This document shows, in pieces, positions 35,906 through 54,580 of a stretch of 64,000 bases of DNA. A program made the translations under genes and the position numbers. Location of the stretch: NCBI GenBank assembly GCA_965644265.1, contig OZ286463.1:24862001-24926000 (forward strand), given 5' to 3'. The notes beneath the pieces were generated by a model, which was not told the origin of the DNA, ran no database searches, and saw only the letters and a list, made by a program, of their open reading frames with translations. Position 1 is the first letter of the stretch; the number at the start of each line of letters is the position of its first letter. The DNA comes from Glycera tridactyla. Lineage: Eukaryota.

Positions 35906-37754
35906 GATATTGACGATTTTCGTTGACATAAAAATACTGTATTCTCAATTGTTTGCATAATATATCTCCATCGAAACACAATACATATTTAAAGGCTTGG
36001 CTAAAATTAATCGCCATGTCAAAACACTTATCGGTAGTCATTAATCCACATGTGGATCTATTTTGGGGAGTGAAGGTTAGATGGTTAGACAGCCACCACT
36101 AAATCTGCCCTTGAGAGTGAATTTTTGGATGTCAGATGCTAATAATGGATTTTTTTTTAGAGTGATTTTCGGAGGATCACCCAGCCTGATGGATCTATTC
36201 TTTGGAGTAGCAGTTTCATGGTCGAGCAGAAGCTGCATCAAGTTCATTGTTAATGGATAACTAATTATAGTTTCAAATTCTGGATGAGTACATAGCTGGC
36301 TTCTATGTTCAGAATCCATCGATTAATGTCCCGCCACCACCCATATGCATTCTGAACGGAGGACACTTACTTCAGGGTCCAATTAGCTCCTAACTGGTTG
36401 CCTTTCAAATGGACACTCTCTACTCGACGATGGACTACTCACTCCAAAGTAGCCATTGATTGATTAAAGTTCAAAAATGACTCCCAATGGCAGAGTCAAT
36501 GATGGCTGCTCGACCCTATGCATTTCAATGTTTCGTTGATGATACCAACTGTGGAATGTTTGTGTCTGATGCCGATTCGAGCAACAGCCATCGACAGTCA
36601 CAACAGTAGTGACGTGTGCCTCCATNNNNNNNNNNNNNNNNNNNNNNNNNNNNNNNNNNNNNNNNNNNNNNNNNNNNNNNNNNNNNNNNNNNNNNNNNNN
36701 NNNNNNNNNNNNNNNNNNNNNNNNNNNNNNNNNNNNNNNNNNNNNNNNNNNNNNNNNNNNNNNNNNNNNNTCAGCTCATCCACTATACAGCAGATTTACT
36801 GCAGCTGAAGCAACTCTATCCATTGATTGTCAATGACCCTTCCTGGAAAATTCTGCAGGGTATGCCACTCCCCTCAGACAATGTCCTCATCGCTGCATCT
36901 CTCGTAACCAACTTTCTGGTGAATATGAATAATAGGGTTTAAGCATTCCACACAGAGTTGTGTGCTTGCTACAGCCAGTCTCTAGATAGTGAGAAATAGA
37001 TCCATTTCTAGGGTCCGTCCCCCACTGATCCCAGCTCAGTATCGAAAGCTCAAACCCTGCGACTGATACGGTTACCCTCGATGCCAACAGCATCCAGGGA
37101 ATGTCTCGTTTCTCTGCCCAATGCAGCCTGCATGGCCACGCCAAACTGGAAAATATACGAGAAAATCGAAGTCGTTCATCCCAACTCGCCGTGTGACTTG
37201 TGAAGTGCTGACGTAGTATGTGACGTAAGAACGTAACTTTAAATCTCACCACTGACGTCACAACCCCTCCACAATTCGACAACTTTTCATGACGCCGTCA
37301 AAGGTTGCGCCTCGAACTTGACGAGCTCAACCAAGCGAGAAAACTCCGAAGGTTTCCCATTTCTTAAAAAGCGAATGCTCTCCGCAGCCAATCGATGGGA
37401 GTTTTAGGTGCCCTCAGAGTAGCTGCGTGCCGTGCGCAAACATCCGGTTTTGCCGGTTGGTGACATGTCCAGCTGCCCAGGTGGGATGTTCTCTTGAATC
37501 GGGTACCTGAAATCAGACGAATATATCCTGTGATCAGGGAGCGTACTGTGACGGCAGCAAGTCCANNNNNNNNNNNNNNNNNNNNNNNNNNNNNNNNNNN
37601 NNNNNNNNNNNNNNNNNNNNNNNNNNNNNNNNNNNNNNNNNNNNNNNNNNNNNNNNNNNNNNNNNNNNNNNNNNNNNNNNNNNNNNNNNNNNNNNNNNNN
37701 NNNNNNNNNNNNNNNNNNNNNNNNNNNNNNNNNNNNNNNNNNNNNNNNNNNNNN

Positions 37755-37858
37755 CAGGTTTGCGAGAATTTTCCAGCATCTCGAACCAGTGATGGCGACC
37801 TTGACCTACAATTTGTGGTCCGACAGCTACGACACCCATCAGTTCGTTACTGCCCACC
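37755..37858 (-). CDS. Syt: Synaptotagmin C2B next (probably terminal) exon, truncated by assembly gap
   Basis: Acceptor gttgacag|G (phase 2 completes Arg), then VGSNELMGVVAVGPQIVGQGRHHWFEMLENSRKP, the C-terminal C2B/WHxL-proximal region of synaptotagmins. Runs into N gap 37566-37754. Confidence 0.92.
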
Positions 37859-39657: not shown

Positions 39658-39829
39658 CTGTCATAATCAATGACCTTGATGACGAGACAAACCTCTTCGA
39701 CGTTCTCCTGAGGCACATCAAATACGATGGCTTCGTTATATACTGGGTTCAGTGTATTACGTTTAACCGACGTCTTTTTCTTCTTAATTCTTTTCCCTTG
39801 ACACATGAGAGACACCTTGACATATGGAT
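39658..39829 (-). CDS. Syt: Synaptotagmin C2B-domain internal exon (Syt-alpha / Syt3-6-9-10-like)
   Basis: Translates (D)[56 protein letters not shown](R), a typical C2B segment with polybasic patch and DYDR. Acceptor tttcag|AT, donor AG|gtaggt; 172 nt, phase 1 to phase 2, matching the next exon. Confidence 0.95.
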
Positions 39830-39985
39830 CTGAAACATAGTAGGACATATTGACACATGAGAGACAACTTGACATATTGGTCTGAAACGTAGCAGCGAAT
39901 ATTGACACATGAGAGACACCTCGACATATGGGTCTGAAACGTAGCAGCGAATATTGACACACGAGAGACACTTTCACATATGGAT
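39798..39985 (-). repeat. 52-bp tandem repeat spanning the Syt intron/exon junction (about 4 copies)
   Basis: Unit is 20 nt of acceptor plus 32 nt of exon start; AG| sites give exon starts at 39829, 39881, 39933 and 39985. Confidence 0.95.
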
Positions 39986-41064
39986 CTCAGACAAAGCATT
40001 ACGCGTTGAGACAATCGAAGATGGATCAAATATAGTTTATCTATGCTCGTGAAATATATGCAAAGTGGAAGTAGGTGAGTCAAAGTTTGAAACATGGTGT
40101 CGAATACATATACAAGTTAGATACTTGATATAATCGTAAGACCGTGAATAGTAACCAAGTGGAGAGTACATACACGTACTTATCTGATGGGTATGAAACT
40201 ATAGATTACCAAGATCAGAGGAAGTAGATATTGCGATATTTTTGAGATACAGTCAGGCTAACCTAGATAATACACCATATGTTAGAGCTTCAACGTTATC
40301 CTGCTTCATATTACCCAGATGCACTTGCATTGTAAGGATCAGAAATATGTGCGATATTCAATTCAATTCAAAACTCTTTATTTATACTCGTAACATATTT
40401 ACAAAAATATTCCGCAGTTAGCCTGCGGAGCTTTTTATGGCGGCCACGAGTAGTTAGTTACTTGATTAGGTACATGTGTTAGTAATGGTTATTATCAGAA
40501 TATATACATTTACCGTCCTATCACAACAATCTTGACAATACCTAGACAATGCATTTATATGGCAGTAGTTATGTATATTCACAGCATATTCTAGAGATTC
40601 TACTAGTTTCAATTAATTGCGGTTGTGAGTAAGACTATACTCGTGCTCTAGCCGAATAACATATCTACAAAACGAGTAAGTGACCTATTTACCGGACAAA
40701 TAAAAATTCGTCTCCTCATTAAATGAGTAGACATGGAGTGATCCTATCGTCCTGTCTGTACAAAAACTGTGCCGGGAGAGAGGATAGATTTCTTAGTAAA
40801 TGAAGAAATCATAGCAGTACAAGGTAAAGTTTTTTTGTGCAATCATCGCTATAGGTTTCATACACAATTTCATCTCAGTAATCAGTATGGGTCGAAACAC
40901 TTGGGAGTGCCTTATAAGAGCTATCAGAACGAATCGTGTGATATGGGACAGAGCATGCTTCGGACTCATATATAATCTCCCATATATATGCCAAATGATC
41001 TGGTATGCAGCCTCATATGTGGCAACAAGCCTATGCAAAGAGTTACATCTATCACAAACCCCCT

Positions 41065-52859: not shown

Positions 52860-54580
52860 AAGCATACTGATACAAAACTTTTGTCAGCCACACTGATACA
52901 CAGACACGAACACCCTCCACTCTGATACACGATGATACGAACACAAGTCACACTGATACACAAGCATGAACACCACCCACAATGATACACAAACATGAGC
53001 ACCATCCACACTGATAGAACATGAACACAAGTCACACTGATAAACAAGCATGAACACCACCCACAATGATACACAAACATGAGCACCATCCACACTGATA
53101 GAACATGAACACGAGTCACACTGATACACAAGCATGAACACCACCCACAATGATACACAAACATGAGCACCATCCACACTGATAGAACATGAACACAAGT
53201 CACACTGATACACAAGCATGAACACCATCCACAATGATACACAAACATGAGCACCATCCACACTGATAGAACATGAACACAAGTCACACTGATACACAAG
53301 CATGAACACCATCCACAATGATACACAAACATGAGCACCATCCACACTGATAAAACATGAACACAAGTCACACTGATACACAAGCATGAACACCATCCAC
53401 AATGATACACAAATATGAGCACCATCCACACTGATAGAACATGAACACAAGTTACACTGATGCATGAATATGAACGCCACTCACAGTGATAATATGAACA
53501 CCATCCACACTGGTACAAACATAAGTAGCATCCACACTGATACACAAACATGATCACCATCCACAATGATACACAAACATGAACACCATCCACACTGATG
53601 CGAAAATGAATACCATCCACACTGATAAAAACATGAACACCATCCACACTGATACAAACATAAGTAGCATCCACACTGATACAAACATAAGTAGCATCCA
53701 CACTGATACAAACATAAGTAGCATCCACACTGAGATACACAAACATGAACACCATCCACACTGATGCGAAAATGAATACCATCCACACTGATACAAACAT
53801 GAACATCATCAACACTGATACACACATATATACACCACCCCCACTGATACATAGACATGAACATCATCAACACTGATACACACATATATACACCACCCCC
53901 ACTGATACATAGACATGAACATCACCAACACTGATACACACATATATACACCACCCCCACTGATACATAGACATGAACATCATCAACACTGATACACACA
54001 TATATACACCACCCCCACTGATACAAACATGAACATCACCAACACTGATACACACATATATACACCACCCCCACTGATACATAGACATGAACATCACCAA
54101 CACTGATACACACATATATACACCACCCCCACTGATACATAGACATGAACATCACCAACACTGATACACACATATATACACCACCCCCACTGATACATGG
54201 ACATGAACATCACCAACACTGATACACACATATATACACCACCCCCACTGATACATAGACATGAACATCACCAACACTGATACACACATATATACACCAC
54301 CCCCACTGATACATAGACATGAACATCATCAACATTGATACACACATATATACACCACCCCCACTGATACATAGACATGAACATCATCAACACTGATACA
54401 CACATATATACACCACCCCCACTGATACATAGACATGAACATCATCAACACTGATACACACATATATACACCACCCCCACTGATACATAGACATGAACAT
54501 CACCAACACTGATACACACATATATACACCACCCCCACTGAGACATAGACATCAACACCATCCCCACAGATACAAAAACC
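52860..54580. repeat. Compound minisatellite built from a 27-29-bp cacactgataca monomer
   Basis: 84-bp trimers (52949-53460), irregular monomers (53480-53810), 58-bp dimers x13 (53810-54565). Confidence 0.95.

Follow-up and report, generated by a model that had tools for sequence, protein, structure and literature searches.

A synaptotagmin gene of Glycera tridactyla carries a short minisatellite across the 3' splice site of a C2B exon. The array lies in the window, i.e., the whole stretch of 64,000 nucleotides analyzed here (contig OZ286463.1, positions 24,862,001 to 24,926,000 of the forward strand). It is probably a "mirage" minisatellite, a tolerated by-product at the Syt C2B 3' splice site. 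As a new observation, the orthologous exon of an unrelated lineage carries a separate array at the corresponding junction. A tolerated array is supported by the uneven decay of the decoy acceptors, the lack of significant coding constraint and the insert-free orthologues. Further support comes from a class of arrays known from the literature, from other junction arrays in the same genome and from independent arrays at the same exon.

The peptide of the authentic C2B exon matched the Pfam domain C2 (1.7e-14) and the C2B domains of Syt3 and Syt1 (E about 1e-28). Against Syt3, the C2B stretch scored 70.6 bits and the C2A stretch 28.9 bits, which identifies the exon as C2B. The nearest named proteins are synaptotagmin-9-like, and the protein collections contain none at 100% identity to the exon peptide of the window. 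Judged by these matches, the host gene is a Syt3/6/9/10-like synaptotagmin (Syt3/5/6/9/10-like group). The intron in front of the exon is a phase 1 intron located inside the Asp codon of the SDPY motif. Exons were searched singly by reference, without a joined spliced model. The upstream exon was not found in the readable sequence of the window; this C2B exon is probably inside a masked N stretch. The full gene model is unreadable in the window because masked N stretches interrupt the locus (36626-36770, 37566-37754, 41742-42061, 43460-43652 and 45694-46043).

The array unit joins 32 nt of exon head to 20 nt of intron tail, here called spacer, which ends in TTTCAG; the last unit provides the real acceptor and the start of the exon. 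On the minus strand the order is exon-head copy A (39985), spacer, copy B (39933), spacer, copy C (39881), spacer and the real exon (39829). A repeat search revealed four copies in register at the 52-nt array. Using a pattern search, the 32-nt exon head was found four times in the window, with 0, 3, 2 and 3 mismatches at 39829, 39881, 39933 and 39985, respectively; 0 matches with up to 3 mismatches are expected (100 shuffles). Between any two exon-head copies, 2-6 of 32 sites differ. The two upstream spacers are identical to each other, and the spacer of the authentic acceptor differs from them at 5 of 20 positions. For the 20-nt spacer no source was detected elsewhere in the window, so that it is restricted to the array, and the 52-nt array is present at a single locus in the 2.04-Gb assembly. 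Among the copies, the one at 39829 forms the exon-proximal end of the array and alone runs on into the rest of the exon.

All four AG-exon starts named in a preliminary description of this DNA (39829, 39881, 39933 and 39985) were reproduced. That description had seen a repeated 52-bp unit and four tandem 3' splice sites. Four exon heads are indeed present, but the array comprises only 3.7 units and the outermost one has no repeated pyrimidine tract; likewise, all AG dinucleotides are present on the minus strand, but the outermost belongs to a weak GAG site. Upstream of copy A, similarity to the spacer does not exceed that of shuffled sequence, and the copied pyrimidine tract is therefore absent before the outermost acceptor. 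The array begins flush with an exon head and the outermost intron tail is missing.

Table: Features of the synaptotagmin locus in the window and of further junction arrays in the same genome and at orthologous loci
Feature	Location	Strand	Description
Next C2B exon (VGSNELMG...HWFEMLENSRKP)	window 37755..37858	minus	runs into masked N stretch 37566-37754
Authentic C2B exon	window 39658..39829	minus	172 nt, 57 residues; donor CAG/GTAGGT; peptide ends VIDYD(R)
Whole tandem array	window 39798-39987	minus	TRF: period 52, 3.7 copies, 89% matches
Last 20 nt of intron (authentic pyrimidine tract and CAG)	window 39830..39849	minus	5 of 20 positions differ from the two upstream spacers
Exon head, copy C	window 39850..39881	minus	3 mismatches; CAG acceptor, CTCAT at -29; +52 nt, premature stop
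Exon head, copy B	window 39902..39933	minus	2 mismatches; CAG acceptor; +104 nt, premature stop
Exon head, copy A (outermost)	window 39954..39985	minus	3 mismatches; preceded by ctGAG; branch-like motif mutated to CTCGT; +156 nt in frame
Acceptor-side array	L003:2780-3063		51-nt unit, at least 5 copies; L002 (second sample) identical
Acceptor-side array	L016:82-233		3 copies; orthologous to the L003 array
Donor-side duplication, same exon	L014:2630-2859 (same in L015)		114 nt x2.0; last 99 nt of exon and 15 nt of intron
Donor-side array, Roco-like gene	G000:C11:449736-450972		95 nt x13.0; 58 nt of exon end and GTAAGT intron start
Donor-side array, Roco-like gene	G000:C11:457357-458816		50 nt x29; 8 nt of exon and intron

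The translations proposed earlier for the four acceptors were all recovered. Position 39829 gives the normal exon, while 39881 (+52) and 39933 (+104) lead to frameshifts that end in ...SREKN and ...NVIH, each followed by a stop. From 39985 (+156) the frame is open, with an insert of 52 aa after the Asp of SDPY. The splice signals of the spare acceptors are unequal. The outermost acceptor at 39985 is a weak ctGAG with a poor tract. Since the outermost unit reads CTCGT, the AG-free zone upstream of acceptor 39933 is devoid of a yTnAy motif. Acceptor 39881 shows CAG, tract and CTCAT at -29 exactly as the real acceptor does and is indistinguishable from it by simple signals; it is the only spare site that equals the real one in this respect, and its product carries a premature stop. 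A CTCAT branch-like motif had been attributed to every unit. It is located at -29 before both 39881 and 39829 but is absent before 39933, i.e., 2 of the 3 upstream units contain it. Upstream of the real acceptor, no consensus branch-like motif other than the CTCAT of copy C is present, and the acceptor probably uses this piece of duplicated exon head as its branch point. A micro-exon or donor use inside the copies would have only weak GTGTCT donors available (judged by eye against the consensus), and the RNA structure of the array showed nothing unusual (z = +1.1).

The two synonymous changes and the one M to V change reported for the outermost copy are present, but the preference for synonymous changes falls short of significance (P=0.11). 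Taking all exon-head copies together, coding constraint was not significant either (P=0.064). That the +156 in-frame product represents a real isoform, with a 52-aa insert in the calcium-binding region of C2B, is extremely improbable. Although no stop codon interrupts the frame across the three units, the period of 52 nt is not divisible by three, so that this openness is not maintained unit by unit. Moreover, the isoform would depend on a GAG acceptor with a poor tract, the insert consists of frame-shifted repeat copies, and no such insert occurs among 336 and 178 homologues.

For comparison, the orthologous exon and its flanks were taken from twelve other sources, with 71-78% nucleotide identity to the window exon. 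Nine of these loci (L004, L006, L007, L008, L017, L018, L019, L020 and L021) have a plain acceptor and no array. Conservation of the alternative sites, which is expected of a regulated switch, is therefore not observed. All spliced orthologues retrieved read ...MDITG(S/A)SD/PYVK, without an insert after SD. In the genomic loci L008 and L020 the upstream exon is visible, and a phase 1 intron is found at the same position. Since this position is common to other animals, the intron is old and was lengthened by the array, not created by it.

Comparison with other lineages also revealed repeats at the same exon. L003 contains a 51-nt array before the same acceptor, for which TRF reports 4.3 copies; more diverged copies are located farther upstream. 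Each unit combines about 26 nt of exon with about 25 nt of intron. The closely related L016 shares 95% exon identity with L003, and the copy number of their orthologous arrays differs (at least 5 versus 3), while the window species is represented by one assembly. As in the window, the outermost copy in L003 and L016 begins directly at the exon head, which follows gtaagaa. The AG is lost in 3 of the 4 nearest L003 copies, which is suggestive of decay, though not significant. In L014 and L015, which are 85% identical to L003, the donor side of the exon is duplicated, and the second copy in L014 reads CTG/GTAAGT. In addition, a sequence at L014:2111-2135 (TACCTTATGTTAAGGT...), located 442 nt before the real exon, may be an ancient remnant of the exon head; across all loci, chance alone would produce about 0.02 matches of this kind.

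A common ancestor of the arrays in the window and in L003 was considered and appears unlikely. The units are built differently (20+32 nt in the window, about 25+26 nt in L003), exon identity reaches only 76%, and the copies of each species bear the variants of their own exon. Judged from these features, it is much more likely that the two arrays are of independent origin.

Junction-spanning arrays are not restricted to the synaptotagmin gene. Two further ones were identified in a Roco-like gene, which is located on the same chromosome at a distance of 24.4 Mb. Both repeat an exon end together with a GT donor. The 54-kb region of the Roco-like gene contains about ten large minisatellites, mostly with near-integer copy numbers. 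Since these other arrays are near-integer in copy number, the flush start of the synaptotagmin array is not a general feature of the genome. Two arrays in this region, G000:C11:428779-430748 and C11:447744-449302, share one 54-nt satellite unit in 36 and 29 copies, respectively, and are located 19 kb apart. This unit resembles a dispersed satellite more than a junction array.

Several of the features described here are known from other systems. In amphioxus, "mirage" minisatellites span intron/exon boundaries of Adh3, the globin genes BflGb6 and BflGb9, troponin C and PGBD5 (PMC3087553, PMC3902484). Their units comprise 10-160 bp with 81-100% identity, the copies contain AG or GT signals, splicing is reportedly undisturbed and the copy number varies (PMC3087553, PMC3902484). 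The window array is likewise a head-to-tail repeat of minisatellite size, whose unit contains both sides of a real junction, intron end and exon start, and its authentic junction lies at the exon-proximal end. It differs from the amphioxus arrays by its occurrence in a different animal, its small size and its already decayed state. Normal splicing and length polymorphism have been shown for the amphioxus arrays. A second example is the human F7 gene, where the first element of the 37-bp VNTR in IVS7 spans an exon/intron boundary; its identical pseudo-sites are silent and the exon-proximal site is used, a choice of the first donor that is explained by 5'-to-3' scanning (PMC1557585). F7 repeats a donor, whereas the window array repeats an acceptor, the last copy of which is presumably in use. 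For this reason the scanning mechanism is not directly transferable. Intron gain and sliding by tandem duplication of a proto-splice site have also been described (Rogers model, Drosophila near-intron pairs, Hellsten et al.; PMC2891723, PMC3265369). The window array resembles Rogers-type gain as a tandem duplication with splice signals that is neutralized by splicing (PMC2891723, PMC3265369). In contrast to such gain, an ancient intron has become 156 nt longer here, and no new intron position lies between the copies. Thus, the earlier reading as a snapshot of tandem duplication, with a copy number that may vary, comes closer and fits the mirage class, while intron gain does not agree with the conserved position.

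Under the preferred reading, a short tandem duplication straddling the acceptor would have grown to 3.7 units by slippage or unequal exchange. Such an array would be tolerated, as the acceptor adjoining the intact exon would still give normal mRNA, and the proximal site at 39829 is presumably the one in use. The spare acceptors would be by-products, with the outermost crippled (GAG, no copied tract) and the second deprived of a branch-like motif. The third, 39881, looks fully competent; if used, it would cause a frameshift and a premature stop, and removal of the transcript by NMD would be expected. Occasional use of 39881 or 39933 would thus yield stop-containing transcripts for NMD. The array probably has no regulatory role, and nothing in the tests that were run shows that it regulates splicing. 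Three observations fit this explanation less easily. The match of 39881 to the real acceptor by simple signals means that its silence is not self-evident. A flush start without the outermost intron tail is not predicted by a plain duplication of intron tail and exon head; a later deletion of the outermost tract, which would have disabled the potentially most competitive decoy, could explain it. Finally, the presence of arrays at one junction in two distant lineages might point to more than chance.

The preliminary description had proposed a repeat-encoded splicing switch between normal protein, NMD substrates and a disrupted C2B. This proposal found no support, considering the weak distal GAG, the +104 site without a branch-like motif, the absence of significant coding constraint and of an insert-bearing orthologous protein, and the 9 array-free orthologous loci. 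One alternative explanation is regulated unproductive splicing, in which the decoys, chiefly 39881, would be used at a controlled rate, turning some of the pre-mRNA into an NMD substrate and tuning the dosage of synaptotagmin. It can draw on the CAG, the tract and the CTCAT at -29 that 39881 shares with the real site, on the early stops in the +52 and +104 products, and on the arrays of another lineage at the same junction. As in NMD-coupled alternative 3' splice sites, the upstream acceptors would give frameshifted, stop-containing mRNAs. However, regulated NMD-coupled poison sites are typically conserved across species, and 9 orthologues do not have the spare sites of the window. In L003 most of the nearest copies have lost their AG, the unit structures of the two lineages are dissimilar and their arrays probably independent, and junction arrays also occur frequently in unrelated genes of this genome. 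Published mirages, moreover, leave splicing unaltered (PMC3087553, PMC3902484). We therefore regard regulated unproductive splicing as unlikely. A more far-reaching idea is that decoy-acceptor arrays were gained independently at the C2B junction of distant lineages because they are useful. In that case 39881 would divert a regulated share of the transcripts to NMD, the branch point would have been recruited from duplicated exon sequence, and the copy number would act as a heritable dial of synaptotagmin dosage. We consider this distinctly improbable.

The flush start of the array also bears on acceptor sliding, which the preliminary description had mentioned. Here, 39985 would be the ancestral start of the exon, and an insertion or duplication filler within the exon would have brought a new CAG, so that the acceptor moved 156 nt downstream with the mRNA unchanged. 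This would agree with an array that begins exactly at an AG-exon head, with a sequence upstream of copy A that is no more spacer-like than shuffles, with a spacer found nowhere else in the window and with the equally flush start in L003 and L016. On the other hand, it requires a lucky filler with a working tract and AG, and 39985 is a GAG site. The near-integer copy numbers of the other arrays in this genome are what plain tandem duplication predicts, and a later deletion of the outermost tract accounts for the same facts. Acceptor sliding is therefore improbable. An assembly artefact, with the repeat absent from the DNA of the organism, is very unlikely. The array is known from a single assembly, but its copies differ at 2-6 of 32 sites and in their spacers, and with only 190 nt it is well within single reads. 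In addition, the same kind of array is present in independent assemblies of other species, and L002 equals L003 from two samples.

Taken alone, the window array would be one more junction-spanning minisatellite and would matter little; the only new element is the recurrence across lineages at one junction. Separate arrays at the same exon in other lineages suggest that mirages occur widely beyond cephalochordates and arise repeatedly at the same junctions. The window array is also an acceptor-side case, to which the donor scanning that explains the silent pseudo-sites of F7 is not obviously applicable, and its working acceptor apparently depends on a branch-like motif that the duplicated exon head provides. 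For genome annotation, gene predictors could easily choose a decoy acceptor and thereby report a frameshifted or insert-bearing synaptotagmin.

The window contains further large tandem arrays, located at 17034-18401 (157 nt x8.7), 52888-54579 (29 nt x59.6) and 24743-25044 (106 nt x3.0). The unit of the latter includes an acceptor-like TTTCTCTACCAG, and no adjoining exon was found. Another array at 45030-45693 consists of a 294-nt unit (x2.3, 100% identity) and adjoins the masked stretch 45694-46043, in what is presumed to be the region of the upstream synaptotagmin intron.
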